A stretch of 64,000 bases of DNA, taken from NCBI GenBank assembly GCA_964270895.1, contig OZ185439.1. One strand, 5' to 3'. This document shows positions 39,260 to 64,000 of this stretch, one piece after another (the first letter of the stretch is position 1; the number at the start of each line of letters is the position of its first letter). The translations under genes were made by a program, and so were the position numbers. Origin of the DNA: Podarcis filfolensis. Lineage: Eukaryota. The notes under the pieces are model-generated. The model was not told the origin of the DNA. It searched no databases and was given only the letters and a program-made list of their open reading frames with translations.

Positions 39260-39620
39260 CGATAAGACTACAATCCCCATAAAGCTTAAAGCTCCATTCT
39301 GGGTTTGCTCTCCCCGCCCTCTTGTCTTTGTGGGGTATTTCTCCTCCCCTCTCCTCGGTTTTCAACGGCGCTTCCAGGCCTGATGGTCGTTAGGCGTTTG
39401 CCGTGTTCGAACAAGCCAATGGCTGCGCGGCCACGAGGCGGCGGCGGGTGGGACTATTTTGCAAACAGCCAATAGGCTTTTGCAGTTGAAGCGACCAATC
39501 GGAAGGCAAGGCGGCAGATATGAGATGGCGGCGGAGTCGGCTCTGAGGGGGAGAGGAGGAGAGAAACGAGTGGGCAGGTAGGTCGGTTGGTGTGTCCGCC
39601 GGGCGGGCCGAGGTAGCGTG
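39260..39620 (+). promoter_or_regulatory. ARHGAP19 CpG-island promoter with a ZNF143/THAP11-type motif and three CCAAT boxes
   Basis: ACTACAATCCCCATAAAGC at 39267-39285; CCAAT at 39416-39420, 39469-39473 and 39495-39499; ATG at 39525. Confidence 0.75.
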
Positions 39621-42600
39621 GCCAGAAGGCTTTGAGAAGCTGAAGTGGGTCAGCTGAGGGCGGGGTTGAGACAGAAACAAGGCATAGGGTATACGAGCCT
39701 TTCGCTGTGGTGCCTCAATCATTTGTGTGGCCTTGGGACGTGAGGCCTGTGGTCCTGCCTCTAGGGCAAGCTGTTTCATAGAGCGGAGGTGCAATGCTCT
39801 GAAGCCCATCCCGTCTGCTCTTGCTCTTTGCCCAGGGGCTGAGGAGAGCGAAGGAGGCGGATCTCCCTTCTCCCTCTAGACGCGCCTGGGCGAGGAGGAA
39901 GTCTGGGGTGGAGCAGAGACGGGAGTGAGTAAGGGGCGACATGGCAGAAGAATCTGATAACATTACGCGTGGCATAACAGATAGAGGAAGGTTTTCTCCC
40001 TCTCTCATAACACTAGGACGAGTGGCATCCAATACAGCTGAATGCTGGAAGACATAGGACAGATGAAAGACGAGGTCATAATTGGTCAAATTATGGAACT
40101 CGCCCTGCCAGGAGGCAGTGATTGACACTAACCTGGACGGCTCGAAAAGAGGATTAGACAAATTCATGGAGGAGAGAGCTGTCAATGACTGCCAGCCATG
40201 ATGTGGCTGTGCAATACCTCCACAGTTGGAGGCAGCAGTGGTTCCAAATAGCAGTTGCTGGAAACTTCAGGAGGGAAGAGTAGGCTCACAGGTTTCCCAC
40301 TGTGAGAACAGGTTGCTGGACTAGATCCAGCGGGCTTGTCTTATGTTCTTATGAAGGGAAATCCTAGTGATTCGGGACTGGGAAAGGTTTTGGGGTGGTT
40401 GTTGGGTGGGATGAAGGAGAGATACAGAGGATGTCAATGTTCCAATTTAGTTGACATGTGGTTCTTCTAGATATTTATTTTATTTATTGCATTTATATAC
40501 AGTACCAGTTTTTTCTCCAAGGAGCTCAGGGTGATGTACATGGTTCTTCCCCTTCCTCATTTTATCCTCAAAAGAAGCCCATAAGTAGGTTAGTGCTGAG
40601 AGACAGTGACTGGACAATGTCACCCAGAGAGCTTAATGGCCGAGTGAGGAATTGAACCCTTAGTTTCCTAGGTTCTAGTCTGGCACTAGCCACTAGGCCA
40701 CACTGTCTTTCCATGTGCCAGTGTGCACACCTAAAGTACAAAGTGTGGTTTTCTGCCCTAATATCATAGGAATAGTGTTCATACAGAGCTAATGTGGTGT
40801 ACTGGTTAGTGTAGGACTAGAATCTGGGAGACCAGGCTTCATATCTCTGCTTGACTCACTGGGTGACTGTGGGCCAGTCAACCTCTCTCAGCACTAATCT
40901 ACTCAGGCTTGTTGTGAGGATAAAATGGGGAGAGGAAGAAGTATGTATGCCATCTTTAGCTCCTTGCAGAAAATGTGGGATGCAAATATATCAAGAAATA
41001 AATGCAATGTGTTAACAGGTTAATAATACAACCGTTGCTACTTCAACCATTATTGGAACGATACATTTTAATACTATGCAAGAAACAAGTCAGAATAAAA
41101 TTTCTTTTTTAAAATACATTTTATTAATTTTCCAGAAGACATTTTCAAAACAATTGGTTCCCCACTCCCCCAGAATAGAATACTAATGTGTCAAATTTTC
41201 CCATAAATCTATATGCATAATTGGTGGGTGTCAGTCATCAGGGCATTTATTTGAATATTTTATAATGGGATGCCATATTGCAACAAAATATTGGTTGTAT
41301 CATTCAGGTCGTGTATTCTCTTAGTTAGTTTCTCAGATAAAGCAAGTGTCCACATATTCTGTTTCCATTGTGTGGTGTGTAGATGATCAAGTCCTTTGCA
41401 GTTTTTTTTATAGTTTCTTTTTGCTATGAGTAGTTGCGCCACTACTAGAAGAAAGGTGGTAAGTTCCATGTGTAATAAAATAAAAATTTCTATTCTAGAA
41501 ACATCCTCCTTGCTTTGTGAGCTTTTGATTTTTTTTTTCAGGGCTTCAGCATGTTTATTCTTCGCATCCTGTAGGTTAAATGGCTTCTTTGCTCAAGCTT
41601 GCTGGAGTCTGCTGTAGAGTTAATAGTTTATTTTCTGCTGTATTTTTCAGGGAGCACCAGTTCTTTTTTTTAGGAACTGCAGTGGAGCAATTCTGTTTGA
41701 TCTTACAGTGTAATCTTCAAAGTCATCCATTAGCTTAGGCCTTTGATACAGACAGCATGACTACGGCTCTGTTTGTAAGAAATGCCAAAATGAATGCTTA
41801 GTATTCATTTCTCCACAACAGGCATGTTTTATTAAGCAGTTGGTTCTTCCATAGTTTATTTTCTGACCACCTTTCACTGTTAAAAGGCCTTTCTTCGCAA
41901 TCACTTTTAATCCCTTTATTCCTTGAAATATAGTGCTGCAAGGCTCTGATATTGATCCTCTGGAAGTTGTAGATTACAGGAGGAAAGTTTTCTTAACACT
42001 TATTTTATGGCATAACCTTAAAGGGCTGCAATCCTTCAGATGCATGAAGCGTTATCCTGAATTGCAGGTATATGTACACATAGTTGGTGAGGATTAAAAT
42101 CAGAGGAAAATGAAATGCAAAAAGTATGAACAATAATAATTATTAGCTTCTCATTCTCCAAACAGTAGTTGATGATAGCACAAACATCCTAGCACTGATA
42201 TACCATGGTTCAAACCACAGATTACAATTTGTCAATATTTTATATGTTAAGCAGACACTGTTCTGTGCTTAATCAATTCTTATCAATATTTTCCCCCTGG
42301 GCCAATTGCTCCTTGCAATATCTTTTATTGTTAAATTAACTGTTCTACTTATTAATATCCCTCTGTACCTGCCGTGACTGAACAATCATCTTCTACTGTG
42401 GCCTTACCTCGAATGCTTGTGGGTGTTCTTCACCTTATTTATATTTATATGTATTTTATAGCCTACTCCACCCTGTAATCCCATGTTGAATTACATACAA
42501 GTAACATGCCTTGCCATATATTGAAGCATATCAAAGCAAGCAGCATCAGTAACAACACTGCAGTGGAATGCATATTCTTAATTAATCCTGTACCCCCAAA

Positions 42601-45600
42601 GACCTATGCAAAGAAGTGTGTCTTGACCCACTGACAATGTAGTTACAATAATACAGCCAGATGCATCTTAGAGGAAAAGCATGGCACAAGCTGGGGGCCA
42701 CATCAAAGAAGGCCCTCCCACACTCTGTCATGGCCCAAACCACCTGTAGGATCTACACTGCAGACCTTAACACCCAGGCGAGTCAGTACGTATTAGAGCT
42801 GCTCTTCAGATACTTCAGCTCCACTTAAGCATAGGGTCCTAAGCACCAAGTTAAAAGTTCTGGAAGCTGTCAGAGGCTCAGCCTTGTGCATGACTGAAAA
42901 AATATTATATGCTACTATAAGAAGCCTAGATGTTGCTTCAGTTAAAGTGATCACATAATTCCATTAGTCTGTCTTTCTATTGAGCCCAGCTCCCCTTTGT
43001 TTTGCTATGGCACTAGATCAAAGTCCTTGAGGATTTTATTCCATTCACAAAAGTCTTCTCATTCATGTCATTGTCACTCATCCTTCCCCGCCCCAACCCC
43101 TTCATGAGCAAAACATTGCCCTTGCTAATTTGGTTTTTCTTCAGCCTTGGTAACAAAAACCAAATAATCTTTTCTTCCTTCTCCTGGACACCCGCTTTCT
43201 AATTGGACACAAATAATAGAGGGGTAAAGCAGCAACACTGAAGGTTATTGCACTGATGATTGCAATACTATTGTGATAAAAGCGGAGAATCCAAGCTGCA
43301 AAGCAAACAAGATTGCTCCCCCTGCCCACATCAGTAACTGCTCTTTTCTAATATTATGCAAACTGGGGGAGTGGGCTGTACACATCCTCCTCCTCCTTTA
43401 ACATGGCTGCAGTACAGGGCTTTTTCTATTGTGCATGACTGGGCTGTCTGAGAAGGGTTCTGATTGTATGTGCTGTCTCACATTTCCATTTCATTAGCGT
43501 TAATAATAGGCAGGCATATTTTTGTGCGGGGGAGTGTTGCTGATAAAGTGACCTTTCAAAACTACAAAGCCCAGTAAAATGTAGCACGGAATAAGGGGGT
43601 TTAGAGCTGTTTCCAACTGTGAGGTCTCTAATCATAAAATTGGGTTGGATTTTAGTTGTCAGGGCAAGACAATAAATGGACTGCAAGCCCATTTCTTTGT
43701 TACAGTATGCCCCAAATGCATGGGGGATTAAAGAATTAAAACAAGGAAAAAGCTGTACTCAAAAGATCCTTCAGGCTGGTTTCAGATGAGAAAAAGGCAA
43801 CAAGAAGAGATGGGATGTAACCTCTAATTATTTATGGTATTGTTTTCTTTTGATTGTTAGGTTTTTGAGCGTACCTAAAATAAAATTTAAAAATAAATTG
43901 GGTGGGGGAGACAACAAATGATGGAGGCAGGCTGCCCCGTGATCTTATGCAATGTAGTTACACACTGGGGAATGAAAAACATGAAAAGGGGAGATTTTAA
44001 AAAGATTTCTTTTTATTAATTATTTTGTTATTTTACTTGTAGCCAGCCTTTCACCAGCCCTTCTAACCAGGGCAGGTTAGAAAAATATCACAACTAAAAG
44101 AGTACAATTGTATTAAAACCTCAAAAAATATAACCACAAAATTCATCAGTAATGCAATTGACAAAACAACAGCCCAGGATAGTAATTGAAGAGGAGGGAG
44201 GATATCCACTCAACCAAAGGTCTGCATAAAGAAAAGTAGAAATGTGGTAAGTCTAGATGGAGATGATGCATGAAAGGTTTCTAGTAACTGGGAATGGTGA
44301 AGTCAATGGAAGAAGTAAAAAATTTTGGGGTTAAGTGCTAAGGTTGCAAGCTTTTGGAAGTCTCCAGCAGTGAGTGACATCACATCCACCAGGTAGGGTA
44401 CGTAGGGCACAGCCATGAAGGCACTAAGGCAAAGACAAGAATTTTATGCAGAAGATGTGGAAGGAAAGTCAGTAGAGATGAGAGTTTATATATTGTGTGA
44501 ATACGCGCGCACACACACCATGCATATACACATAATATACTGGACATGAATGAGGGGAATGTACCAGCATGAGTCCAAGAGCTATTTTCAACTGCGATGT
44601 CTAAACTATTGTGAGGGTTTGCTTAAAATTGAAGAAATCTTAAAAGTAATTGTTTAAAATCATGGGCAGAGTCTGTCAATGAATATGACAAGGACACTTT
44701 TCTCCATTCAGTGTTCAAGTCTGATGCAGGTGACATGCCTAGCGTTCCATCTGTCACTTTCTGTGGGGTATGAAAAGTGGAGAAGAAGTTGGTTAGCCTG
44801 AGTTCTCCTTTGGCTCCATATCAAGGTTGATGCATTTGTGCCAAGAGGGCTAATAAATGAGTCTTTGTGTTGTTTAGTGTGCATGGAATTTGCATAGGCT
44901 GTGCTGGAGCAGGCAGATCTGTTTCTGAAAACAAGGAGCAAGTTCTTCTCGCTGTGTCTCTGCTTCCCAATGCCTCATCAGAAGCTTTCTGCACTTGTGT
45001 AAGCAATCTGACTTTCTGTGTTTATTAAGTAATAGGGGCTATCAGATTTTCTAGAAGTTTAGATTTGAAACCCCACAAATAGGTATTGCATGAATGACAG
45101 TCAAATTTAGTTCAGTGAATTTTCTTGAATGTCTAGATCATGACTGGGACACTGGGGAGGGGAGGGTGAATAACTGGCATAGCTATTCTGTGGAATGATC
45201 AGTTTTCTTGGGTGAAGACACTAACTACCGCATTAAGCAAGTAGAGAGAAGTTGGATCTAATTAGATTACAATGTATTCTGGACAAAACGTACTTAGTGG
45301 TGGAGCTGGCCTGGGCTGACATGTATAAGACAGCAGAATGTGCTGCAAGTGGGAGGTCAATTGACAATCATTCCCAGCTGCTTGAGCTGATCTGCTCCAT
45401 CTTGTCCTCGGCTTGTTAAGCACGTCAAACTGCAGGGAAGTCTACCGAGCAGCACTGGAATCAGTCTGCACTTGGCAGCCAACTCACCAAGTGGTTGGAG
45501 AAAGCAGTACTTCTCCATGCTTTGCTGCTTTTGGAGTGATTTTGCCAACTTAATTGCTCCAATTATTCAGAACCTACTGTCCAGTTACAACTCACCCCTA

Positions 45601-48600
45601 GGCTGGCACTGCAGCAGGGTATTACGTACAGGGGGTGGCTTTCAGGTAATCTTCGTAAAAATATCCCACTGCATCACGGCATTCAAGTGCATAAGAGATA
45701 ATTTGGTTAAATTCATGTGACAGCCTTTCTTCCTGTGTGTCTTTAAATGTTTGACTTGCAACAAATTTTTCATAATATTTCACCTCTAAGAAAACAGATA
45801 ATTATATTTGTTGAGTCCAGCTGAACCCCCTCATAAAACAGGAATTTGCTCTCTTTGCATAGAGAGAAACCTGGCACAGAATGTCCCATCTCAGAAGATG
45901 ATGCAATCTCTACCTCAAATCTGTTCTAGATTATTTTCATACATGCTTAGTAATTTGGAATGTGAGTTAAATTGTTGGTCTTTTTGTTAAATATTTTGAT
46001 TAGTATCTCAATACCAAACTTTGGCCAGTTATAAGGTCTTGCCCTCTGTAGGGTCTGATGTGTAATATGACAGGTGAGTGCATCACTCAAACAGTTAGAG
46101 ACCATGCTGAAGGACTATCTGCAGGTTGTACTTGATTGATTGCTAAATGACGTGCTATCTGGTCAGCCCCACCTGACTTGATTTATACATGTTGTGCTGG
46201 TATTTACAGCAAGGATAAGAAGCCTCAGGCCCCGGGGACCAAATGTGGCCCTCCAAGCCTCTCTATTCAGCTCTCAGGATGGCCAAAGCCCATCACCAGC
46301 CCTGCATCCTCAAGTGCTTTTATCTGGGTTGAATCTATTCTTAATTATTGTAACATCACTTTATTGCCTTGCTGCAGAGCTTTGTGTGTGTGTGTTTTAG
46401 AGACTTTTACGTGGTGGATGTACCTTATTGTCTAAAAAGTCACATACCTGCCTCTGGCTCTACCCTCCACTGGTATGTGGCTCCCAGGAAGACTGTCCAT
46501 GAGGGAATGCTGTCCTTGGGCTGAAATAGGTTCCCTACCCCAGATCTGCAGGTGGCTCCTGCGTAGCTGAGTATTTTAGTTTGTGTTCAGGTATGTCTCC
46601 CAAAGTAATGTATCTTTGTTTCTCTCCCTAGTGATGCCATTTGCAGTTTAGTTATCTGCAATGACTCCTCCCTTCAACGGCATCAGATCATCTTCAATCC
46701 AGACTTCTTTGTGGAAAAGCTGCGACATGAGAAACCTGAGGCATTCACAGAGCTTGTGGTCAGTAACATCACCCGGCTGATTGACCTGCCTGGAGCAGAG
46801 CTAGCCCAGCTGATGGGACAGGAGGACCCTCAGTTGCCTGGCACATCCTCAGGGTTTTTCCGTTCCCTGATGTCTCTGAAACGCAAAGGTGAGCCTGATG
46901 TGTTGGCTAAGATTTTCCCCTTAATTTTTTGATGTTAAGCCTTGGTATCCTGGGTACAGCCTCTGCTAAGTGTCCCACATATGTGGCAACAACTCCAAAA
47001 TTTTTCTGGTCCAAGTACAGTGCTGACCAGCCCCTTATCAAAAGAAAATAAGAAGGGCAGTACAGGCAATTCTCATTTTACATGGGGGTTCAGTTCTGGA
47101 CCCCTGCATGTGTTGGCGTAGCGTGCGTAAGCCCATTCTACTCCCACTCTGTTCCACCCCCGTTCTTCCTCTTTTCAGGAAATCTTTATGATGCTTCAGG
47201 GCTACTTCTGGGTTTGGCGCTGTGTGCGTGATCATGCGTCATTCGGACAGAGCCAGTGTGGTATAATGGTTAAGAGCGGTAGTCTCGTAATCTGGGGAAC
47301 CGGGTTTGTGTCTCCGCTCCTCCACATGCAGCTGCTGGGTGACCTTGGGCCAGTCACACTTCTTTGAAGTCTCTCAGCCCCACTCACCTCACAGAGTGTT
47401 TGTTGTGGGGGAGGAAGGGAAAGGAGAATGTTAGCCACTTTGAGACTCCTTAAAGGGAGTGAAAGGCGGGATATCAAATCCAAACTCTTCTTCTTCTTCT
47501 TCTTCTTCTGCTATTTTTTTTTTTTTTTTTATAATATATTTATTGAAGTTTTCAAATAAAGCATATATTAGATAAGCACCACTTATCATTGTCCATTTAA
47601 CATCTCTCAATTGTTACATGGGACTCCCCCACACCTCCCGCATACACTTACATCATTATTAAATTAATTTCAAACAAATTATCATTTAACTCATCTTAAT
47701 TAATAATCTTAATTTGGTTTGACATATAATTCAGCCTTAAGTCTAATTTAATGGTAGACAATTGTCTGCACTGGCATCCAATTCAGCACTCAGCCAAATT
47801 ACAATATTTTTGTAAATAAATCTTAAATTTCCTCCAGTCTTCTTCCATCCTTTCTTCTCCCTGGTCTCGAATTCTGCCGGTCATCTCGGCTAATTGCATA
47901 TAGTCCATCAGTTGCATCTGCCATTCTTCCACAGTGGGTAGCTCCTGAGTTTTCCAATTCTTGGCAATTAATATTCTTGCTGCTGTTGTTGCGTACAAAA
48001 AGAATGTTCTGTCCTTTTTTAACACACTCTGGCCGACAATACCCAGGAGAAAGGCCTCTGATTTCTTAGTAAAGGTGTATTTAAACACCTTTTTTAATTC
48101 ATTATATATCTTCTCCCAAAAGGCCTTCACTCTAGGGCAGGTCCACCAGAGGTGAAAAAATGTTCCTTCATTTTCCTTACATTTCCAACATTTGCTATCA
48201 GACGAATGGTATATTTTAGCCAGTTTAACAGGGGTCATGTACCATCTATACATCATTTTCATCACATTTTCCTTCAACGCATTACATGCAGTGAAGTTCA
48301 GCCCAGAGGTCCACAACCTTTCCCAATCTTCAAACATAATATTATACCCAATATCCTGCGCCCATTTTATCATTGTTGATTTTACCATTTCGTCATGTGT
48401 GTTCCATTTCAGCAGCAAGTTATACATTCTTGAAAGTACCTTAGTCTTAGGTTCTAACAGTTCAGTTTCTAACTTTGACTTTTCCACTTGGAATCCTAGC
48501 TTTTTGTCATTTTTAAACACTTCTTTAATCTGAGCATAGTGTAACCAGTCTCGCACTTTGTCTCTCATCTTTTCTAAACTCTGCAATTTCCAGTTGTCAC

Positions 48601-50120
48601 CATCCTTTTCTATTATCTCCCAATATTTTGGCCAGTTGGCCTCCATATTGGCTCTTTTCCGAGCCTTAGCCTCCAGGGGTGACAGCCACCTCGGAGTTTT
48701 ATTCTCCAGTAAGTCTTTATATTTTGTCCAGACATTAAAAACTGATTTTCTGACAATATGGTTCTTGAAGGCCTTATTTATCTTAGCTTTATCATACCAT
48801 AAATATGCATGCCATCCAAACGCATTATTAAAACCTTCCAAATCCAAGACATCCGTATCTTCAAGAAGTAACCAATCTTTTAACCAGCAACCTTCTTCTG
48901 CTAAATCGGTCATTGCCTGTAAGACAATGACAATGTTAATTTAAATACTTGATTTACACAAGGGGTGGGAAACCTGTGGCCCTAAGATGCTGCTGGACTC
49001 AAAGTCGCATCAGTCCCAGGCAGCATGGCCAGTGATGATCAGGGATGATGGGAATTGTAGTCATCAATATTTGGAAGGCCACAGGTTCTCCACCCATAGT
49101 TTTCTTTATCATCCCTTTCAATTCCATTCTTATGGAGGACAAAGCTCTTGTTTTGGCAGCCATAATGGTGCCACCCATGCTAGAAGGTAGTATATGCATC
49201 TTTATTTTTTTTTAAGCAGGTTAAAAAAAAAGTCCCGAAACAGAAAGGGAAAAACTGCATGGGTGTGTGCTTCTATGGAGGGTGGGAAGAGGAGGTGGAA
49301 AGCAGCAGAGAGTGAGGAGGGTGTGGTGTGCAAAGATGCCGGCCCACAACATGAGATCCACTTTTGGGGGTAGTTTACTACATACAGCTGCAATAGTAAC
49401 GGACTGTGCCTCTTGTTTCATCTGGAATAGGAGAGCTGGGGAGAGACCTTAGCTTGGTGACAGAGCATGCGCTTTGCATTTGGAAGGTTCCACATATAAT
49501 CCCTGGCTTCTACAGTTAAAACTAATGTGCAAAATGTTTGCCTGAGATCCTACACATCTGCTGCCAGCCAGACAAATAGTCTACTCTGATCTAGATGAGC
49601 AAATAGTCTGAACAGTGTAGTCTATGCCTTATATCTTACCTAGAAAAGCAATCACTAGTTCAGCTGTCAACTGGTGTACCTTCTTCCTCCCATTGTGCTG
49701 CCTACACTTTTGGGTGTGCCAGGTTTGGATGAATGTTGTGCTCCCACCCATACTTGTAAAACATTTATGTTTAATTCTTTGGTCAGCTGGTCATTCTGTG
49801 CTACTAGCAGGCAAGAGGATTCCTATAGCTAAACTCTCCTGCTTCAGCTGGCTCTCAGTCTCGGTTCCCTTTGAAGATACCCTTATTTGTATCTCCTCTT
49901 CAAAGTCTTAACTGGACCTATGTAGCTGCTAAGAGCAATGTTCCTATGGTGTTGCTTAGAGATGCTGAACAAGGAAACAGTCACTTAAGCTGGGAGAAAA
50001 ATCTGGTAGACAACCAGCCTTGGACTCTCAACCTGCATTTCTACTTGTTTATTTTCTGGCAAATTTATTTTGCTGGAAGACGATCAGAGTGGATGGGGCA
50101 ACCCAATCAGATGGGTGGCA

Positions 50121-50165
<45 letters not shown>

Positions 50166-53100
50166 TAATTACTATTCATCTTCATCATCATCTAGGGATA
50201 TATTCCTTCCAAACTGAATTAAAATATACAGCCCTTATTTCCCACTGCAATATAACTTACAAAGGTTTCCATCTTGCCCTGGCAACAAAATAATTAACGT
50301 CACATTTAAAGGATGAAATGTGAGATTGCTTGAACAATCCTTTACCTGCCTAAATATGACTACAAATATCAGCCCAAATATCTAAGATGTAGTTTTTATA
50401 CAGATGTTCTATGCCCTAGGAATATTGGGGTGGGAGGGAGTAGGCTTAATGAATGAAAGAATGAAGAACCTTTGGGTTGGGGGGATGGAAACATGCAGGG
50501 TGATGTATAACGCTGGAGAGAAGAGGGATGAATTTGGAGGAGATTACTGGAAGGTGAATGATAAAGATTTGGGTGGAAGAAGGATTTTAGATATGAGCAA
50601 TAATTTTGCATGGTGTGTAACTGGATGTGTGCACATGGCATGTGGCCCTTGAAGGGGTGTCCAGCCCTCAATGCCAAATAAAGTTAGCCACCCTGTTCTG
50701 GGGTATTTCCCTGTAGTGGGGAGGGGATCCTTGGATAGCTTGTCCCTCCCACTTGCTCCACTGGGCAGAATTATTCAAATGAGATAGCTCGTACCTTCCA
50801 GTGGGACGGTGACCCCTCCAGTTCCTTCCTGTCTAGCTCCTTGTGCAGGAAGAATGTCATGGGACTGGCAAATTGATTCCCTTTGTGGCCATGTATCAAA
50901 ATTCATTTTTACTTTAATGCCAGTCACATATTGGAAGTTACCATGTTTTTCTATTCCCCTTTAAAGCTGCTAAATGTATATGGCAGTGTTCTGCTAATGC
51001 TTCCTCCCACTCCTCCTCCGCCATGTGCTCCCCACACTCTCCCCAGAACTGCTCCAGAGAATTGAGGGAAGACATTGAACAGAATTTGGGGCATGTGAGG
51101 AGAGAAGAGAAACATCAGCCTACTGGTATCTAAATGGAGTTCCATGTGCTAAGGCTGTGTACCTAAGAATTCCAGATGATGGAGACAAATAGGGAAGACC
51201 ATCATTGCTATGAAATGTTCAATTAGGCCTGCTGGAAACAGAATGCTTGTCAAGATGGACTTCGGGTTTGCTCCAGGAAGTTAGTTTTTATATATTGCCT
51301 ATCCTTCTGTGGAATCTGTTCCTTTGGGTCATTTTGAAACAGATCCAAGTTTAGAAAACCTGTATCTGTTTTACAGCATACTTTCCTTTCCAGATCACAG
51401 TAAGCGTTTTTTGTTTGCTTTTTTTAAAACCTGAGGAGATGAGGAGTTGCATTTGCAAGAGAAAGGGTCGAAGTGAACACACAGTGAACTGGGGCTTTTT
51501 AATTCTGCCTTTTCAGTATAGTATGGAAATATTTGCACATTTCTGGGACTCATAACAATTGATGATGTTGGCTACTCATTATCTCCTCCTTTTCATCTCT
51601 AGAGAAAGGGGTGGTTTTTGGAGCTCCACTGACTGAAGAAGGTATTGCTCAAATATCTCAACTGATAGAATATCTGCATAAGAGTAAGTGGTTTGTGGTT
51701 TCCTTTCTGTCTTTGTTTAGTCAAGGATAGTGGACTGGTCTGGGGGCACAGATTTAACTCACTTCTGAGCTGAGGAAGTCCTAGGAGCTATGTGATTCTA
51801 GACACTAACCTTTTCCTGCCACCCCCCACCCATATTAAATGTTTAGTGATTTTTTTGTACTAGACCTCTGTAGGATATTCAGATAATGTTGCAGGAAGAA
51901 AAGGAAAGTATAAAAGGTTAAGAAGCTTTGTCAATATACTAGAAGAGGACAACATTTTATCTAACATATTCTTGATACCCCTTTTGTCTTTCTTCTCATG
52001 GTGCAGATCTGCGGGTGGAAGGCTTGTTCCGAGTGCCAGGAAACAGTACCAGGCAGCAGAACCTGAAAGAAGCCTTGAACAGTGGGACAGAAATTGACTT
52101 GGATTCAGGGGAGTTTCACTCTAATGATGTGGCCACTCTGCTGAAGATGTTCTTGGGAGAATTACCAGAGCCTTTGTTGACCCATAAACATTTCCATGCA
52201 CACCTCAAAATTTCAGGTGAGTCAGCCTTGGAGGGAAGTGTGTTAACATCAATAATTTGGGGTTTGCCTTGTTCAGTGATAAAGCTGTTGGGTTAGGATC
52301 AGAGAAAGGCCTACTTTCTCTGCCCATGTCATAATAGAAATATATAAGCATGAAATCTTTGGGATTTCTGATTTATGCTGAGGAAAAGAAGAGTGCAAAG
52401 GAGTGTGATGGCAAGTTGGGAATGGGCAGTTGATAAAATAGTGTATAGTTTCCTGAAATGTGTGTGCAGCTGAAGTTTCTTGAGATGTTTTCCTGTTAAT
52501 AGATCTGATGCTGTTGGATGACAAGGGCAACAAGACCAACATACCCGATAAGCAGCGTCAGATTGAAGCACTGCAGCTCCTCTTCTTGATCCTGCCAGCC
52601 CCCAATCGCAGCCTGCTCAAATTGCTGTTGGATCTGCTTTATCAGACAGCCAAAAAGCAGGACAAGAACAAGATGTCAGCTCATAACCTGGCTCTTATGT
52701 TTTCACCTCACATTTTGTGGCCTCGAAATGTAAGTGGTGTTAGATTTTTAGGCAGCAGTATAAAAAACCAGGCTGGGAAGGAGTTCATCTGTCCTATCCC
52801 AGCTTGGCTGCTGTGTCCTGACTTCTGAAAATAAACCTACCTCTACCAGGGAGCTTGCATCTTACCTACACTCTCCTAACGATTCCACTTTGGTGTTTCC
52901 CACTATTGCCAGGTGACTGCCAGTGACCTACAGGAAAACATTCCCAAGCTAAATAACGGGATGGCTTTTATGATCAAGCACTCGCAGAAGCTCTTCAAGG
53001 TAGGTGCTTCAAAAGGAAGGGACAATCTCTATCTCTCTTTCAGTATCTGCTTAGCAAATGTCTCAGGCTGTCCCCTCCTGGGGGAAAATATGTTCTGTGC

Positions 53101-56100
53101 ACAGTCCTGACACTGTCAAGCCTGACATCTTTTTATGTATTACTTCCTTGGAGGTGCTGTGTACTGTGCCTCCTCCCTTTGCTGGGTAGATCACAAGTGG
53201 CACTGATATGTGAAAACAAGGCCTCCTATTCTAAATGGCAGGATATCCTGCACATGTGAGTGTCCTTGTAGTTACCGTGCCAAACTCTGCCTTAACCAGA
53301 CAGTGCCCCTTTCCTGATCAGTTACTATCATGGTCTCTGAGGCTGCTCTTTGGGTCCTCATCTGTCCCTCTTTGCCATTTAGCTTAATAAATATCCCTAT
53401 TAATGGCTAAAATCTCTAGAAAACTAGGCAGGTTCACATTTAATTGTCAAAAAGTGAGACTCCTAAAGCATCTGGTAGCATACAACATATCTGAGATGAT
53501 AAAGGACTGAATGTTTGCCCTGGGTGACCCTCCTACCTATAAAGGAAGCACGCTTCAGAAGATTTTGCATGGATTACATTCAAAGTTGAAGTTGCTGGTT
53601 TGGTGGGGTGAGTGCCTGGAGCAACCGCTATAGGATGGAACCTCAGAGTTAGGGAGACTTCAGCTTAATTGTGTCTGACTCCTTCTGTTTCACTCTCCTT
53701 CCAAGGCTCCCTCATATATCCGGGAATGTGCAAGGCTGCATTACTTGGACTCCAGAACACATGCCTCAAAGGTAAGAGCAGTCCATGGCATTGGTCATGA
53801 AAGGGAGCACCCAACATGGGCACCAGCAGGTCAGCAAACTCATGACTAAAACAGTCTTGTTCATGAGAATTTCCAATAAGGGATTCTTCGGGGGAAATCT
53901 ATTCCTTAGGAAGGCAGAAAAGATGTAATTAGACCCCAGTTTTGCCACTTGGACTGCTACATATCCCCTCTAATAAAATATGTTCTAGTTAAGCTAAAAT
54001 TCTAGAGAACGGAACAAATTCTCATTTAACTGTCAAAAACAGGACAACATTTAGTATAGCATATGCATATTTTGGGGAGAGAGGAAAAGATCGGGCCCTC
54101 AGCTGTTCACCCAGATCTGACTTTGCTACTGGATATGAAGCTCAGACTACCTTTATTAGTGTGATGAAAGGCAAGATAGCTATCATTGGGAGTGGGGTGC
54201 TGATGGTCTTTATAGGACAAAACAGCCTGAAGTGCAAAGTGTTCTTTTGAATTTTTGCAGGATGACTTGGACTTGCCTGTGCCCCGGAATTTCAAAGACT
54301 TCCAGCTTCTGAAATTCAAGAAGCGAGGACTGGTGGATCCCTCTGCCCACCAAGAAGACACACAGCAACATACAGAAGAAGCACTGAAAGAGCTCTTCCA
54401 CCATGTTCATAATATGCCAGACTCTGCCAAGAAAAAGAAGCTCATTCAACAGGTAGAAGGGAGACTTTACTAATTGTCTGGAGCAAAGCGGCATAAATGG
54501 GAACCAGGATCAATCTTTAGGACAGATGGGCAATGCTGCAGAACTAATCATGCTATAAAGTGTGTGTTCTAGTTTCAGAAGCACCCTGAAGCTCTCACTC
54601 CTCAGGCAGGTGTACCCACACCCCGGACCCAGAAGCGGGCTCGCACTCGTTCCTTCAGTGGCTTAATCAAGGTATGGCTCTTTCTACCATTAACAATAAC
54701 TTCGGCTGCAGTGGTGCTGCTCAAGTTACCGTATTTTTCGCCCTATAGGACGCACCATCCCATAAGGCGCACCTAGTTTTTTTGGGGGGGGGAAATAAAG
54801 GGAAACAAATTATTTCCCCCCCAGGCGCGGGGCTGGGGCGGGGGAGGCCCGAGCTTCCCCCGACCCCAGCCCCCAAACAGGCAGCTCTCTGCAAGCCGTG
54901 GGAGCCCAGCGCTGGCTCCCGCAGCTTGCTGAGAGGTCCGCAAAGCCTGGACGCGCTGAGCTCAGTGCGCGCAGGCTTCGGCATGCAGGCAACTCTCCGC
55001 AAGCAGCGGGAGCGCTCCCGCTGCTTGCAGAGAGGTCCACGAAGCCTGGAGAGCGAGAGGGGTCGGTGCACACCGACCCCTCTCACTCTCCAGGCTTCAG
55101 CGAAAGGCTGCATTCGCCCCATAGGACGCACACACATTTCCCCTTCATTTTTGGAGGGGAAAAAGTGCATCCTATAGGGCGAGAAATACGGTACTTCTCG
55201 CTGGTGTATGCATTGGGCATATTGTCTGCTGTCCAGATGCATAAGTTTTCTGATGGTATGGGGTGTACATATTCAGGCTTCCATAAATAAGCCCTATTCT
55301 GTTCTGTTGCCTTTTTCTTTTCGTTCCCCAGTCACAATCCCAGTGTTTTTCTTTTCTTCATACAGCGTAAGGTGCTGGGGAGTCAAGGGTCTTTGGATAA
55401 AAAAGGGAAGGATGCAGTTTTGGAATCAGCGGGCATGAAAGAGCAGAAGCACGGCAGCAAGGAGAATGTAAGCATGGTAAGGCCAGCTGGAAGAACAATC
55501 ACTGTGCACTCATAATGGGGTTGGTTCATGAAGGGGGTTGCTGCTAGCTATTGCCTGCAGTTCATATCTGTCTGCACTGATGTGGCGCCCTAAATTATCC
55601 TGAGCACAACAGGAAGTCTGCATCACTCACATGACTAAGTGATGGGGCCAGGAATATGCCACTGCTATGTGACTGGAATGGCTACTAAATGCAGTACCTG
55701 CTCAGCCCTGGACATGAGTGGGGAATGGAGGGAAGACACACCAGCCATGACCCCAACTTCCTTGGAAACACTGCTATTGTCCACCAGTTTCAGAATGTGG
55801 TAGAAATGATACCTCCCATGCTGCCCAGAAACAAAGGGAGCCAAACCACACTGGCTGGCTTGTGAGTGGAGCCATGCTAGCTACCACCATACTTCCTCAA
55901 TACACCGCATCCCAACATGTGAGCACGGCTCCTAAGAGGCCCCAGGCAGCCTTGTAGGAAGGGATCCAGCACCTCAAATACCCCACCCCACATAGTTGCA
56001 CACCAGCCTCAGATCCCTGGCAGCTCATAGAACCACCCCCCAACCACCCTGTGCCTGATGGCTTCTGCCTTCTGGGTAGCATCCCATCCCTCACTGACTG

Positions 56101-57084
56101 CCTCATATCCCCTGGCAGCAACACTCAGCCCCCTGGTGCATTCCCAGTGACCCATCTGTGGAGCCAAAGGAAACAGGAAGTGGGGGAACCCAAGTCACAT
56201 CCAACCTCCCTACCCACCCTCCTTCCAAGAGTTGCATCCTAAAGCCACTTAAACCTGATTCAACACTTATGGAACATTGATTTTTTTTATTGAATGGCAC
56301 CTGATAGAGTGGATCTGAAAAGATAAAGAGGCATGTACATGGTTACTGACCAATCATCCCAGCAGAGTTTTTGTGCTGAGTGGCCCAACCCTACAGAGGA
56401 GCAACTGGAAGGGAAATTTTCTGTGCCATGTTTGGTATAAAGATGTACTGTTGATGTTGGCATGGATGTGTATTGAAGGGGTACGGGATCCAGCATAAGT
56501 GCTGCTTGTCTCTGTTGCCCATAGCTGTGACGCTTTCCAGATACGTATGTCACTGGCTGAGTGTTCTGCCAGCATATCTGTTGTGGCAGTGACACATGTG
56601 GCATTCTTCCAGTGCAGCAGGGTTTCCACTGAATCCTGTAACCCCTGACCCAGTGTAGGAGTGAGCCCTAAGCCCATCTGCCCTGCTGCTCTTAGGTAGT
56701 TGAACTCTTTCTTTCCCAGTGTAACAAAAGGCTGTTTCTTTCCTTTCCAAATCTGGGGAATTGAACTTGATGCCTCTGCTCCTATTGGCTGGTGGCCATT
56801 TTTGCATTTGGATGCTCCTTCCTTCTGAATTAAGGCTCCATATTTTTTTCTGGAGCAGCTTAATTTCCAGAAGTTTGGCAGACACGTGTGTGACATGGCA
56901 GGCTAGTAAATCTATGCAGCATGAGTAAGATCATGTTAGAAGTTGACTTGAATTTAGGCAGGCCAGTTGCTGGCAACTGAACCATCCTATCTTAGAGAGT
57001 GACAGCAAGGTTCAGAGGTTAGAGTTTTCTCATCTTCCCTAGTTACAGAAACCTGCTTCCTCTACAGCCATCAATGTGATTTGA
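39525..57084 (+). CDS. ARHGAP19: Rho GTPase-activating protein 19 (ARHGAP19); as assembled the frame ends at an in-frame TGA inside exon 11 (471 or 474 aa)
   Basis: Exons 39525-39577, 46632-46888, 51603-51683, 52007-52216, 52503-52729, 52913-52999, 53706-53771, 54261-54452, 54573-54671, 55366-55467 (or -55476), then 57043-57084 (TGA). SDAICSLVICNDSS...FNPDFFVEKLRHEKPE...LRVEGLFRVPGNSTRQQ (RhoGAP arginine finger)...KRARTRSFSGLIKRKVLG matches remembered ARHGAP19. Exons 1-10 are secure; the 3' end is less so. Confidence 0.93.
40090..40338 (+). mobile_element. CR1 LINE 3' end (approximate limits)
   Basis: ggacggctcgaaaagaggattagacaaattcatggaggagag...gttgctggactagatccagc...cttatgttcttatg, typical of CR1 3' termini. 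Confidence 0.7.
40480..40705 (-). mobile_element. MIR-like tRNA SINE
   Basis: Reverse complement reads cagtgtggcctagtggctag...gggttcaattcctcactcggcc...ctgggtgac...cagtcactgtctctcagc...gaggataaaatg. Confidence 0.7.
40785..40995 (+). mobile_element. MIR-like tRNA SINE
   Basis: tgtggtgtactggttagtg...ctgggagaccagg...ctgggtgactgtgggccagtcaacctctctcagc...gttgtgaggataaaatgggg. Confidence 0.7.
41105..41480 (-). mobile_element. Old L1-clade 3' fragment
   Basis: T-run plus TTTATT at the left end; ORF TTFLLVVAQLLIAKRNYKK...QWKQNMWTLALSEKLT resembles the C-termini of the two longer L1 copies. Confidence 0.55.
47247..47510 (+). mobile_element. tRNA-derived SINE with (TTC)n tail
   Basis: gagccagtgtggtataatggttaagagc...ctgggtgaccttgggccagtcaca...gaaaggcgggatatcaaatccaaact(ctt)n. 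Confidence 0.8.
47514..48891 (-). mobile_element. Young 5'-truncated L1-clade LINE (open ORF2 3' part, about 370 codons) in ARHGAP19 intron 2
   Basis: Uninterrupted frame to the stop at 47783 including KCWKCKENEGTFFHLWWTC; poly(A) tail (T-run 47514-47530) and AATAAA; 12-bp TSD CTTCTTCTGCTA at 47502-47513 and 48892-48903. Confidence 0.94.
48959..49097. mobile_element. hAT-like MITE
   Basis: Imperfect TIRs caaggggtgggaaacctgtggcc / ggccacaggttctccacccatag; internal gatgggaattgtagtc. Confidence 0.7.
49440..49635 (+). mobile_element. Degraded tRNA-derived SINE
   Basis: ttagcttggtgacagagcatgcgctttgcatttggaaggttcc...aatccctggc...ctgctgccagccagaca. Relatives at about 36330-36470 (-) and 60660-60790 (+). 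Confidence 0.5.
50120..50172. repeat. (ATT)n microsatellite
   Basis: Read directly. Confidence 0.95.
54729..55191. mobile_element. GC-rich TcMar (Tc2/pogo-like) MITE, 463 bp
   Basis: TIRs CCGTATTTTTCGCCCTATAGGA / TCCTATAGGGCGAGAAATACGG with TA on both sides; internal duplicated units and a 30-bp perfect palindrome. Confidence 0.92.
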
Positions 57085-57129
57085 GCACGTCTTAGGTCCC
57101 CTGAGGACAGGAAAGGGGAGTTCAATTCT
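57043..57129 (+). CDS. ARHGAP19: ARHGAP19 exon 11 (29 codons, internal TGA at codon 14)
   Basis: Pyrimidine tract plus AG at 57041-57042; LQKPASSTAINVI*ARLRSPEDRKGEFNS; donor GTATGT at 57130; phase 0 at both ends. Confidence 0.72.
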
Positions 57130-57775
57130 GTATGTATACATTACCATGTATAAGCAGCAGCAGCTTGCAATCTCATGTTCTCCTTTTTGGTATGAAGCCT
57201 ATGGACTTACCGAACTGCCTTTTGGAAGAATAGAATCATAGAATTGTAGAGGGGGAAGGAATCCCAAGGGTCATCTGGTCCAGCTCCATGCAATGCAGGC
57301 ATCCTGCCCACAGCCACCCCTGGGTGGGCCTGAACCATCAACCTCTGGTTAACATCCAGACACATTGACCCATTGCACCACAGAGGCTGCAAAGATTCTT
57401 TTTAAGTGTGTGATGTGTGTCTATAGCTTGATGCCTAAACTCATTGCCAAGAATTAACCAAGAAGCTGCTGTCAGGATGGTTAACTTTTATCTGACAGAT
57501 AAAACTAGTGAATAGATTTAAAGTGTTAATGTTAGTCCTCAAACTGCCTTGAGTAGGCTGTTTCTGTTGACAGCATCCGTGAATGAAAGGAAGATGTGCA
57601 GGGAAGCAACCAAGCTAGAAGAGTGCATTAAAATGGTCCTTAGCCTTAAATCTGGTCTTCTCAACAGGAAGTAGAGGTGTAATGTGGTGAAATGTGTCTG
57701 TGGCTTCCTATCCTTTCCTAATGCTTGCAAGCACAGCTCAGTACAAATGTACTAATTATTCTCCTTCTGGTGCAG

Positions 57776-57832
57776 GACTCCCGTAAATATACTCGATTCC
57801 ATGGTTCCTCGACAAAGGAGTCTTCCATTTGA
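57776..57832 (+). CDS. ARHGAP19: ARHGAP19 terminal exon 12 coding part (DSRKYTRFHGSSTKESSI*), only translated if the exon-11 TGA is bypassed or wrong
   Basis: Strong acceptor ...ttctccttctggtgcag at 57775, phase-0 open frame to TGA, followed by a long UTR-like stretch with AATAAA at 59043-59048 and ATTAAA at 60063-60068. Confidence 0.6.
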   Translation, partial: DSRKYTRFHGSSTKESSI

Positions 57833-58489
57833 AGATCCACTCAATGGTCGGTCTCTCTTTATATCAGTATATATCTACACACAGCAAAGACTTGCAGCTC
57901 TGTGGATAATGCCTGCTACTCCCAAGCTGTGAGTCAAGACTCGCTTATCCCTCTAACCTCACTTATTGGAGCCTGGCCTACAACTGTGTGTCTGCCAGAA
58001 TAACAGACTCTTCCATTGAACATGAGGAAACCACTATTCAACCACTTGTCTAGCCTGAGAATGGACTGGACAGTATCTGCAGTATAGCCTCTCTTTGGAG
58101 AGGTTGCTTTGTATGTCTTGTTCTCTCAGCTGTCCATCTTTCTAACAGTTCTTTGGGACTTGGCTTACACTGTCCTGTTTTGTGGCTGGTGTTTGTTTGT
58201 TTGTTTTTTGATTTTGGCTTTTAGTGTGTACGCACACTGTTTCTTTTACCCCTGCAATTCCCATTAGCATCCACAGTAGAGTCAAGCTTTCAGATCCCCT
58301 TGGCAGCTAGGCTCATTTCGGCCTCTCTTTGTATGGAAGTCTCTCTGTTGTGGTTACTGATGGGATTTGAGAAGTAGCTGTGCTCTTAGCTGCCTCTCCC
58401 AGATTGCAGGGATCTCCCTCAGGCCTGTGGCTCATCTGTCACAAATCCCAGCGTCGGACATATCCGAACTTAGACATCTTAAACCAGGG

Positions 58490-61400
58490 ATGCGGGGAGC
58501 CTGTGGCACTCCAGATGTTGTTGGATTCAGTCTCCAGTTAGCCCAGCCAGCATGTCCTATTCTTGGGGATGATTGGGAGTTGTAATCCAGCAATATCCCT
58601 CATTTAAGAGCAGCGGTAGCAGGAAAGAATTTCTGCAAACTGCCCCTTTAAAAAAATAGAGCCCAAGGGCTCCTTGCCTGAATTCTAGCATGTCTGGTGA
58701 ATCACCTGCAATGTGATTACATCTTTCTCCCCTCAAAAGGCCGCCAGTTCTGTTGCCACAGACACTTGCCTTCCGCCTGCTACGATTATTCTTCCATCAG
58801 CGCTGATTGCCAAGACAGCGTTTTGGCTGAGGCTCTGCCTGATGGAGTCTGTTTCACTGCCCCCTACCTGTCACATTCCCATTGTCTGTGGCCCAGGCTC
58901 TGATGTACGTTGCTCAGGCAGGACAGGGGGCTGACAGTTTAATGACTAACAATCTGCTGAAAATGTACTGAAAGAGAGGAACTTGCAAATACAGAAGGCT
59001 AACTGACTTGCTCCCTGGGAAGGAGGAGAGGCTGTCAAGATGAATAAAAGAAATGTTCCTGTTTCCTTCCAACAATGAGAAGAGGGCAGGTGGGAGGGTA
59101 GTGCAATGCTATAGCAATACTGCTATTTGCAGCTCTGTATTTGCTAAGCTTTCCCTTCACCTAAAGGAACAAGTGTCTGTCTGGGTCAGGGGTGGTGAAC
59201 CTGTGGCCCTCCAAGTTGTGTTGGACAAAACACCTATTAAAACTCCCACCTATTACCAGTACACAGTCATCAGCCCCAGCTAATGTGGCTGAGTTGAACA
59301 ACATCTGGAGGGCCACTTACTATTCCTGATAACTGGCTTCTGCCTTAGTCTCAGATAGATTTGGCTCAAAGGCTTTTGCAAAGGCACTGTATATTTGAAT
59401 TTCCTAAATATGTGAGGATTGAGCTTCTTTTTATTATTCTAAAAAGACTGTCGTAAATCTGTGTCAGGGACCCTGTCAAATGGTCTTCTGATGTGTAGAG
59501 ATGTATACACCCCTGTTAAAGCAGGTATGGGGAACCTGTGGCCTTCCAGGTGGTGTTCAACTCAACCTCTTGTCACCCACAACAAGTAGCCATATGGTCT
59601 GGAGCTGATAAAGAGTTTGGGGTCCGACCACACCTGGAGACTCACAGGTTAGCTGCTTCTATGTTCCTCATCTCCCCAACCTCGAAGCTGGTATGTAGCT
59701 TCAGCCAAAGAAGTAGAAAACTGCTAACACTTGGGAGGTCATAGGCAAGACTGAAAAGTGCCCAAAAAAATGTCAGGGGAAGCAATCATAGTGGGCAAAA
59801 CCTGTTTCGGTTACTCTAGATCTTAAGCTTGGGTCATTCAAATCTTAGCGGTATTGTAAGTGAAAGCAGGACTGCCCCCATTGTTGTGTCAGTGCTGCTT
59901 GTGCAGGTTCTCTGACTGCCCCCATTGTTTTTCATGTTTTACTGTTCTCTTAACTTATCCTTATGTGGACAACCTTTACTTATTTATGCAATGTAGTGAT
60001 GTAAGTAAAATAATATGTTGTTTCTTGTGGTGTATTGCCCTCTGTTAATGTGAAAATCCTACATTAAATACTGGTGGTTATTGGTGCCTTTTTAACAGAC
60101 TCTTGGCTAATTTTATTTTTTATGCAGAATGGAGATCGGATTTAAGAGACGGAGAGTCTGTGACCATAAATATAATGACTTTAAAAGTGTGTGCTTCTGG
60201 AGCTGGGCTTGACCAGGGGACTCCTGTGCCTGTTCCCTTCCAACTATCAACAACCCACTTCTTTTTCCTCTTGCTCTTTCCCATGATTCTATATTCTTCC
60301 CATTACTGGCCCATCATTCCACAATGGTAAAGAAAGTGGGCATCACACTAGTCCTCATAGACATTGTAAAACGGAAGGTCCTCCATTCTGTTAATGGAGG
60401 ACAACTCTCATCTGCTGTAGCCAGCACAGCCAGTGGTCAGGGCTGATGGGCATGGTGGTCCACTAACAGCTAGAGGGTCACTGGTTCCCCATCCTCTGTA
60501 GAAGGGCTTCTGAAAAGACATTTGGGAAAAGAGGGAGCCTGTATTAGATGATCACTATGGAAAGAAGGTTCTTCCCATGGACTGAGTTAATGGAGTAGAG
60601 AACCAAGACAACAATGCAGTCAGAATCCACCCCACTTCTCCACAAGGCTTAATTAGAGGGGAAGGCATAGTTAGGCTTCCTGCTGGCATTGACCCCTGTT
60701 GAAAACCCCTGGAGAGCCACTGCCAGTCAGCCTAGACAATGCTGGACTAGCTGCACCATTTCTCTGGCTCAAGGCAGCTCTACATCCAAGTTATTTCAGA
60801 ACAAAGTGATGGGGAAAAGGCTATACCTTGCAATCATCCAGCAAGCTACCAATAACTACCTTCTGCCAACCCATGCAGGCAATGCTACTTCTGAAGCATT
60901 AACATTGCTAAAACCCAGAGAAGTTATTTGTTGCCATGTGCTGACAGTCAAAACTGAGGGAATCAGAGAGATCCTGAACTCAAACTACTTCCCTGGAGAC
61001 TGACCTTGGGAAAGGTCTCAAAGCTAATTTTCCTGGAAAATGAAATTTTGTGACAGTTTGAAAAGTCACGGCAACAGTGATGATAGGATGTGAAACCTGG
61101 TTGCCTTCCCATGCATGCAAGTGTCTGTCTATAACTGGTGGAAGGACCTGATCCTTGTCTGCCAATTCCCTTTCTCCGATATTAAAATCTAAGCAAACAG
61201 TACTTTATTCTTGGTAAAGAGAGGAAAAAACTTCTGCTACAGAGCCACAAGAGGGAGCTATTTGCTCATCCATGCCTTGTGATTTCCTGTCTACACACCT
61301 TAGCATGATCAGCTGGTAGGTGAAAGGGATTGTGACATGAGAGGTGATGGAGCAAAGGATTGCTATTCTCATTCTTGGTTTGGCCAGTTTTCTCTGTTTT

Positions 61401-63590
61401 AGCAGATGGGGCCCTGTGATTTATTTTCTCCATTGCCTTCACTTGATGCAAACTGCTCCAGATTCCTTAAGCCAAGCAAAATGGGGCCCACACACCAACC
61501 CGATGACATGCTGTAATGCAGTTCCTAATGCAGATGAAACGCAACAGCCCTGTAGCAGTTATTAATGACTCCCATCCCAAGACCACCTTCTAGCTAGCCA
61601 TAAATACAGAGAAGACAACTCCTTGGCATCTCTATCAATAAAGCAGGACAGGACTATTATGCCTCCCTCTCTTGTCGGGCCAGGGAAAGGGTTTGGTGGG
61701 CTCCATGCAAAGGAAAATCAAATGGAGTTGAAGAGAAGCAATGCGATGCCCAGTGTACTTCCTTTTGAATCCTTCCTGCCCCCTTCCGGGAGCCAAGGCA
61801 ATCAGGAAAAACCCTTGGGAACCAAGTCCTCTCCAAAGAGGCATGAGTTTATTGCAGTAAAACTGCAGTGTTTGACACTATGGAGAAATATGCCAGACAT
61901 ACTTGGCAACAGCAAGTGGAAAGTTAGCCTAATAAGCAGTAAATTATCCTACCCTTTCCCTGAGGAGGGATAATGAATTTCTCCAAGTAAAGGAACAGAG
62001 AGGGAGAGAGAGGAAGAAAGTGTAACAGTGAGTACAAACAGGGTCTCTGGCTTAGAGATTCTACATGGAACAGTAACCAAATTCCCACAAATTTGTCACA
62101 TGTGTGTGGAATTTGATCCATTTTGTGTAAACGATGGCTAGAATGCGGTGGGGGAATAGCTGGCACATTCTGCAGCATCTGTTAGGAAAGCTATTATAAT
62201 AAGAGTCTCTGAGGGTTCCAGGACAATAACCATCTCAAGTCCACGTACCTGCAGTTGAAGCCAGTTTCCTGAGCCACCCAAGTGGTGGGATCTTTCCTTT
62301 TGCCCGTAGGAAATAAACTAAGAATCAAGATTACAAATAAATACTTTCTCTGGGCTGGGAGACTGCTACAGTCAATTACCCAAACAACCGTGAAGGCCCT
62401 TGGTAGGACCGAATAACAAATCCCAGAAGCTACGACCAAAATAGGCTTCCGTTGTAACCAGTAATGTGCTGCATTATGGAACTCTGGATGGCTTTAAAGG
62501 CTGGAATAAAGCCATATTGGAAGGGGGAGGTGTTGTGTGTCCTCTAACTTGAAAATATCAGAACTAAAGGTGGCGGAAATCCACGTATTTAGCAGTTACT
62601 ATGAATGCTTTTAACCTACCTTTCGAGGGCATATGTAAATTCCACCTCCACACTTGCACATGTTGGCCACCATGTCGAATCGGCAACCAATGGCTGGAAT
62701 TGAGACATATTTTGAAAAATGTACTCTCTTTCAGAACCCAGCAGGACACGAGCAAATCCCCTAGTGGTTAGAGACCACTGGAAAGGAGGCAAGATGGGTC
62801 TCACTTGGAAGGGAGTTCCAAATTCTAGGGCCGCCCAGAGCCTTTCTGCTATTTATTACCTACTTTTCTTCCTCTACATTTCTCATGGGTACGCAATATA
62901 CCTTATAGCCATAAAGCAAAGTGGTTCATGCGCAATATACCTTATAGCCATAAAGCAAAGTGGTTCATGCGGTAGCTAAAACATGTTTGCTAGTGTGAAC
63001 GTGAACTGTGGAAGCTGCACATTCTGAGCTGGAAGTCTAGTTTATATCTGAGCTCAGGGTGATGAGAGAAATTATCCTGCAGGTCCAGCACTCATTTTGT
63101 GTTTTAGCCACATGTTCCAAGGCTCAGCCTAGGACTGGAAAAAAGACTCCAGAACTGATCCCTGTCTCAGGTAAGTCCTACTTTTTCTAGCCCCTTTTAT
63201 TTGGTCTTCCTTCTCACACATACCATGCTGCTCACAAGTGCTCAGGGATGCTTTTCCCTGACATCTTCTGGTTCTCTGTGTTAGTAGCTGTAAGTCAAAG
63301 TTGTTGGAGATAACCTTTTACACAAAGAGCTCATGATAGGGGGCCTTGCAAATAAACAGAGGACTTTGAGCCACACCTTTCATTGCATTTTCTCAGTCGT
63401 TGTTTCATCAGGAAAGAGACTTTCAGAGTAGATCTTGGATGCTATGGCTAAAATTCCATCTCCGTATCTTTTTATGGCAGGGGTGGTTCTCATGTTGTTG
63501 GACTACAGCTCCCATGATTCTTGATCATTGCCTCTGCTGGTGGGGGCTGATGGGAGTCATAGTCCAACAACACCTGGAGGGCTGCCCCTG
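58490..63590. mobile_element. Cluster of degraded hAT-like MITE copies (about 58495-58590, 59185-59320, 59521-59660, 60415-60500, 63480-63590)
   Basis: Shared ends (ggaacctgtggccctcc / ctggagggcc) and the internal ggactaca...gatgggag motif. Confidence 0.6.
62892..62971. repeat. Perfect 39-bp tandem duplication
   Basis: CGCAATATACCTTATAGCCATAAAGCAAAGTGGTTCATG at 62892-62930 and 62931-62969. Confidence 0.95.
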
Positions 63591-64000
63591 CTTTATAGAG
63601 AACGTTGTGTGCAATAATTTTGCCAGCCTCAAGAGGGTGCTGGTGTGACAAGACAAAAAATGAATAGCGGTAATGATTGTTGAAATTACTTTCCTAATGG
63701 CATATAATGTAGAACCTGATGTATTCCATTAAGGCAGCAATCAAATTATAGTCATGTAATGACACATCTCAAACTTCTATAAAGAGACTTTGTAGGAAAG
63801 GAATGGTGGGAAGAGATTTCTATAATAAATTATGAAGAGAACTAAAATTTGTGAAAATTTTAATTGTGCCTCCGCCAGGAACATGAGAGAGGAATAATGT
63901 ACTGCCCTAGTTGAATATGAAAGCAAGGTTCTGCTTCTGTCGTAAAAAGCAACTGATTTCACTGGTTTCACTAAGGGGTAAATATGTGGATAGTGACTGG

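Follow-up and report, generated by a model that had tools for sequence, protein, structure and literature searches.

The in-frame TGA in ARHGAP19 of Podarcis filfolensis very probably lies in the relic of an exon that is skipped in frame in this genus

In the 64,000-nt stretch of Podarcis filfolensis DNA analysed here (contig OZ185439.1 of assembly GCA_964270895.1, referred to below as the window), a TGA stands in frame inside what a preliminary description, made from the letters alone, had read as the penultimate exon of ARHGAP19. The locus thus raises the question whether a conserved gene ends prematurely in this lizard or whether the stop codon is never read. That the gene is ARHGAP19 was borne out, as the ARHGAP19 protein of P. 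raffonei (P0298) maps to the window by tblastn and the ARHGAP19 orthologs of vertebrates match it; the coding exons other than the segment in question lie on the + strand at 39525-57829 (see Table 1 for the features around the stop). The TGA is indeed in frame, the translation of 57043-57129 being LQKPASSTAINVI*ARLRSPEDRKGEFNS, and this frame matches that of the upstream exon, where two GT donors lie in tandem, one at 55468 and one at 55477, each of them in phase 0. After the TGA the frame stays free of stops for 15 codons, for which the chance expectation is about (61/64)^15 = 0.5, so that the open run is unremarkable. We consider it very probable that the segment is a relic of ARHGAP19 exon 11 (in human numbering), that it was inactivated in Podarcis by two shared lesions and is skipped in frame, and that the TGA is consequently not translated.

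Table 1. Positions in the window of the ARHGAP19 features surrounding the in-frame TGA.
Feature	Position	Strand	Evidence
ARHGAP19 exon 10 (human numbering), RKVLGSQ...SKENVSM	55366-55476	+	Sequence; tblastn with P0298; RNA joint 55476>57776
Relic of ancestral exon 11, 75 nt, phase 0-0	57043-57117	+	DNA and protein alignments; RNA depth
In-frame TGA replacing a conserved Arg codon, CGA	57082-57084	+	Sequence; alignment of Podarcis and outgroups; X15 DNA contig
Destroyed ancestral 5' splice site	57115-57121	+	DNA alignment; identical lesion in all 3 Podarcis sequences
GTATGT, a conserved intronic GT, cryptic at best	57130-57135	+	Rhineura alignment; used by no RNA joint
Last coding exon, DSRKYTRFHGSSTKESSI followed by the stop	57776-57832	+	Sequence; RNA; tblastn; joined directly to 55476 in RNA
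3' UTR, at least to 58600	57833-58600	+	RNA contig (X1, record 7), 57775-58600, depth 289

Orthologs were collected by a HMMER search with the RhoGAP exon and by word-based protein searches, which together returned ARHGAP19 from many vertebrates; Podarcis was the sole lacertid genus among the protein-search results. In all squamates outside Podarcis the tail of the protein is like that of Rhineura, where ...SKENVNM is followed by LQRPASSPTINVIRARLKSLEHGKE and then by DSCKHTVFHGTSTKESSI, and the relic is orthologous to LQRPASSPTINVIRARLKSLEHGKE. This exon-11 segment, which we take to be part of a disordered C-terminal tail, is present in 12 out of 12 non-Podarcis tetrapods in the protein alignment, and every one of those sampled has the conserved pattern SP...R-x-R/K-L-K...RKE. 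The exon 11 of tetrapods and the relic are alike in position, phase and the motif SP...RLK...KE; in the other tetrapods the exon enters the mRNA and is translated, whereas in Podarcis it is dead. The stretch 57043-57129 would thus appear to be coding because it is homologous to an exon that died recently. The stop had been placed opposite a Pro, which applies to primate ARHGAP19 (P0206) and mammals; in the squamates, turtle, alligator and salamander aligned, the residue at this position is a conserved Arg.

The RefSeq models of the two other wall lizards have the same structure as the one proposed here. All five ARHGAP19 isoforms, three of P. muralis (isoforms X1-X3; XP_028586369-71) and two of P. 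raffonei (isoforms X1-X2; XP_053245449-50), read ...SKENVSM directly followed by DSRKYTRFHGSSTKESSI and lack exon 11, although the relic, its TGA and the deleted donor are left unmarked in these models. The window protein differs at a few residues from those of both species and, therefore, belongs to a third, closely related one. Two annotated isoforms from elsewhere, of Anolis (isoform X3, P0274) and Rhinatrema (isoform X2, P0246), omit exon 10 instead (...SFSGLIK joined to LQR...), and several lineages appear to make alternative use of the symmetric exons of the C-terminal tail of ARHGAP19. The Podarcis RefSeq proteins contain one further peculiarity, an additional coding exon (about 53 codons, AAKCIWQCSANASS...EEKHQPT) at about 50966-51124 (+) between the SLKRK and EKGVVFG exons. 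All five isoforms of the two species contain it, and the window preserves it undamaged; no other squamate protein examined has it. In Rhineura, the similarity is weak and confined to the 3' edge of this exon and the following intron. It may be a new, Podarcis- or lacertid-specific exon just upstream of the RhoGAP domain.

Alignment of the window with the corresponding loci (exon and flanks) of P. muralis (L001), P. raffonei (L003), Rhineura (L002), Eublepharis (L004) and Tiliqua (L005) revealed two lesions, both of which are common to the three Podarcis sequences (the P. filfolensis window, P. muralis and P. raffonei) and occur in none of the three outgroups. At the position of the stop, all three Podarcis sequences have TGA and Rhineura, Eublepharis and Tiliqua have CGA (Arg), a change that falls at a CpG. 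At the ancestral donor the outgroups read AAAGAG/GTGAGC (Rhineura), AAAGAG/GCAAGT (Eublepharis) and AAAGAG/GTATGT (Tiliqua), where the slash marks the exon end. The Podarcis sequences read AAAGGGG--AGTTC: a 2-nt deletion takes the T of the GT and the final codon GAG has become GGG (A>G), as is evident when GAG/GTGAGC of Rhineura is set against GGG/G--AGT of the window. The acceptor of the relic, with a polypyrimidine tract and an AG at 57041-57042, is intact. As an aside, the exon-11 donor of Eublepharis (GAG/GCAAGT, at about 22091 of its locus) appears to belong to a GC-AG intron.

The preliminary description had instead credited the segment with a good donor, the GTATGT that begins at 57130. 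The alignment does not support this, since the ancestral exon ended at 57117 and its own donor has been deleted. The GTATGT lies 12 nt beyond the dead donor, in phase 0; its counterpart in Rhineura is intronic, 14 nt downstream of the real donor, and, judged by matches to the consensus MAG/GTRAGT, it agrees at 5 out of 9 positions, none of them among the 3 exonic ones.

Might the TGA be an error of the assembly or consensus, or a variant found only in the reference individual? To this we attach practically no probability. Three species, each with an independent assembly, carry the TGA, and it is unchanged in a DNA contig of organism C (X15) that spans 56929-58523. The latter deviates from the window only at 57063, at 57088 and in having 11 nt inserted behind 57654, and it therefore represents the same species on another haplotype. 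The occurrence of the TGA in the three assemblies and on this second haplotype rules out both an error and a private polymorphism. The nonsense change had also been described as recent, lineage-specific or polymorphic, with CGA>TGA among the guessed types. It is lineage-specific and of that type; it is neither recent nor polymorphic, since at least three Podarcis species share it. The 11-nt insertion itself (GTCTTCTCAAC) is a tandem duplication of the adjacent letters and an intronic indel polymorphism, which occurs in the X15 contig and in the RNA contig of organism A and is absent from the window and from organism D.

RNA and DNA reads were examined over 55300-58600. With a difference of about 1-2% from the window, organisms A and B are relatives and do not belong to its own species; compared with the letters of P. 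muralis and P. raffonei, those of organisms A and D match each in about half of the cases, and these organisms are further Podarcis-like taxa. The DNA data of organism D (X17) have zero coverage of 55300-57221. In organism A, an RNA contig (X1) with a depth of 248 contains the joint 55476>57776, with GT..AG ends, and the second X1 contig, from which the 3' UTR in Table 1 derives, carries 101 further letters upstream of 57775. In organism B, where about 12% of the run gave 20 raw RNA reads at the locus (X23), 2 reads span the same joint and 3 further reads break off at 57775, where their loose letters are similar to the last ones of exon 10. The donor used in RNA is the GTAAGG at 55477 (phase 0) and not the one at 55468. 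The X1 depth is 0-1.6 over 57043-57129 versus 105-145 over exon 10 and 274-289 over the last exon, and joints into 57043 or out of 57129 are listed in neither X1 nor X23. The segment is, consequently, not the working penultimate exon that it had been thought to be, since both the RNA of two related Podarcis organisms and the RefSeq models of two species skip it. That it is skipped in the species of the window as well we infer from the shared lesions and from these relatives.

The RNA data also bear on the idea that a minor isoform includes the relic by way of the cryptic GT at 57130, yielding a protein without the ESSI tail, either as noise or in a regulatory role. We think this improbable. 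The intact acceptor and the short distance of the cryptic GT from the dead donor would allow for such an isoform, the raw reads are few, and RNA contigs drop rare variants and show presence, not absence. However, no read or contig speaks in its favour, the depth over the relic does not exceed 1.6 in X1, and the sole X1 contig reaching the relic (57115-57315, depth 2.5) extends into the intron as pre-mRNA would.

More far-reaching was the original proposal that 57043-57129 is spliced to the last exon via the GTATGT, so that the TGA removes about 34 C-terminal residues from the protein while the mRNA escapes nonsense-mediated decay (NMD). A stop less than 50-55 nt upstream of the last exon junction escapes NMD, and the distance of 45 nt given for this stop suits that rule; the arithmetic stands (57129 minus 57084), but the figure has a meaning only if the unused GT at 57130 were a donor. 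In its favour are a genuine, in-frame TGA, an intact acceptor and a GT in phase 0; we nevertheless regard the proposal as very improbable. In the dominant contig and in the raw reads 55476 is followed by 57776, and no joint involves 57043 or 57129; the donor of the ancestral exon has been lost by deletion and, in Rhineura, its supposed substitute is an unused intronic GT; every RefSeq model omits the segment; and the last exon is still constrained, as discussed below. The stable mRNA encoding a shortened protein that was envisaged is thus at odds with the data, since the segment is absent from the mature mRNA of the relatives and the conserved tail is retained. Compared with known NMD-escaping stops, the 45-nt geometry would fit only with the cryptic donor; the relic lies outside the mature mRNA, and the rule is not engaged.

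Recoding of the UGA, as selenocysteine or by programmed readthrough, has a negligible probability. Its attraction lies in the open frame beyond the stop and in the conserved tail. Against it, the segment is not in the mRNA of the relatives, the orthologs have an Arg codon (CGA) at this position and not Cys or Sec, and the context is UGA-GCA and not UGA-CUAG. The earlier statement that there is no convincing SECIS holds, as SECIS families account for 0 of the 16 Rfam matches with E<=1 in 55000-64000. For the main transcript, recoding is refuted by the Arg of the orthologs, the position of the segment outside the mRNA and the lack of a SECIS among these matches.

A few other features in and near the gene deserve mention. 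In intron 11, a tRNA-like Rfam match (32.8 bits) occurs at 57315-57387 (-), and the depth of the DNA contigs spikes to 3000-4500 at 57187-57408 and near 58500 (58408-58600); these two stretches look like copies of a tRNA-derived SINE. Upstream of exon 10, long stop-free stretches are found on both strands of 54724-55290, with several weak miRNA-like hairpin matches to Rfam at 55035-55190, far below gathering scores; this part of the intron looks like a palindromic or inverted repeat.

The divergence of the segment was compared with that of its surroundings. Among the three Podarcis sequences the relic diverges by 2.3-4.6%, which amounts to 2-4 substitutions, versus 2.0-3.4% for the flanking introns; exon 10 diverges by 0.9-1.8%. 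The last coding exon has no differences in its 57 nt and is, therefore, still constrained as coding sequence. Three of the four changes in the relic between the window and P. muralis are non-synonymous, in a codon reading of the alignment with just these four sites. The divergence of the relic, with its 2-4 substitutions, is consistent with neutral drift. Relative to Rhineura the divergences are similar, i.e., 17.8% for the relic, 16.2% for exon 10 and 19.3% for the last exon, which would fit a loss of the exon that is recent relative to the split of lacertids and amphisbaenians.

How the exon came to be lost can be envisaged as follows. The 2-nt deletion removed the GT of the 5' splice site, which would leave exon 11 no longer definable, and the spliceosome would then join exon 10, from the donor at 55477, to the last exon, at the acceptor before 57776; the loss of the donor is thus the presumed cause of the skipping. 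The reading frame would be kept because the exon measures 75 nt and all junctions are in phase 0, and the protein would lose 25 internal residues and retain the conserved C-terminal 18, ending in ESSI. The TGA would never be read because the segment is intronic with respect to the mature mRNA, and the relic would by now drift at about the rate of an intron. With regard to which lesion is the older, the sequences show no intermediate: those of Podarcis all carry the pair, and the outgroups carry neither. If the donor was lost first, the nonsense change would have been neutral once the exon was skipped, and this is the simpler order because CGA>TGA is a fast CpG transition. Less likely, although not far-fetched, is the reverse order, in which the nonsense change came first and the deletion of the donor was then favoured, as leaving out the poisoned exon in frame brought back the conserved PDZ-like tail. 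If true, this order would make the Podarcis gene nature's equivalent of therapeutic exon skipping.

Exon loss by splice-site mutation is a well-known process, in which a symmetric exon is skipped in frame, accumulates disabling changes and diverges as fast as an intron. The Podarcis segment is the ortholog of a translated exon, carries lesions of both splice site and frame, and its flanking exons are joined directly in the RNA of relatives; it differs in nothing essential from other lineage-specific exon losses that leave a pseudoexon. The outcome is also the same as in nonsense-associated altered splicing and in therapeutic exon skipping (DMD), where a symmetric exon that bears a nonsense change is omitted and the downstream frame is kept, although in Podarcis the deleted donor alone would explain the skipping. 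No paper treating both ARHGAP19 and Podarcis was found in the literature. Inactivation of exon 11 is an ordinary lineage-specific exon loss that is already reflected in the public gene models, and one more case of such loss in a gene for which, in the literature on ARHGAP19 and Podarcis, none was described.

The class I PDZ-binding motif has the form S/T-x-hydrophobic-COOH. From coelacanth to birds, the ARHGAP19 proteins of non-mammals have the C-terminus E/S-S/T-S-I/L (ESSI, ETSI, SSSL; at 57821-57829 (+) in the window), which fits a putative motif of this class, as judged from the residues. Mammalian ARHGAP19 ends in ...KKGFL, without a PDZ-type motif. In the literature on ARHGAP19 and 'PDZ-binding', no title concerned an ARHGAP19 motif. 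The human exon-11 segment, SPAVTMTPTRLKWSEGKKEG, contains the CDK1 site Thr476, which according to PMC12646654 (citing Marceaux et al., 2018) is essential for cell division. In the protein alignment, the Thr-Pro of this mammalian site is Ile-Arg in squamates and, therefore, the CDK1 site is not general.

If the segment is indeed an intronic relic, as we consider very probable, an apparent premature stop in a conserved gene is accounted for, and a truncated protein, escape from NMD and recoding are all unneeded. The public Podarcis gene models would then be right to omit the segment. An exon that is kept across tetrapods, and that holds a mitotic CDK1 site in mammals, would be dispensable in wall lizards, where the last 18 residues of the protein are fully conserved. 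This suggests that in non-mammals it is the extreme C-terminus, and not the exon-11 segment, that forms the constrained part of the ARHGAP19 tail. Mammals show the opposite situation: there the exon-11 segment is kept and the ESSI-type end is missing.
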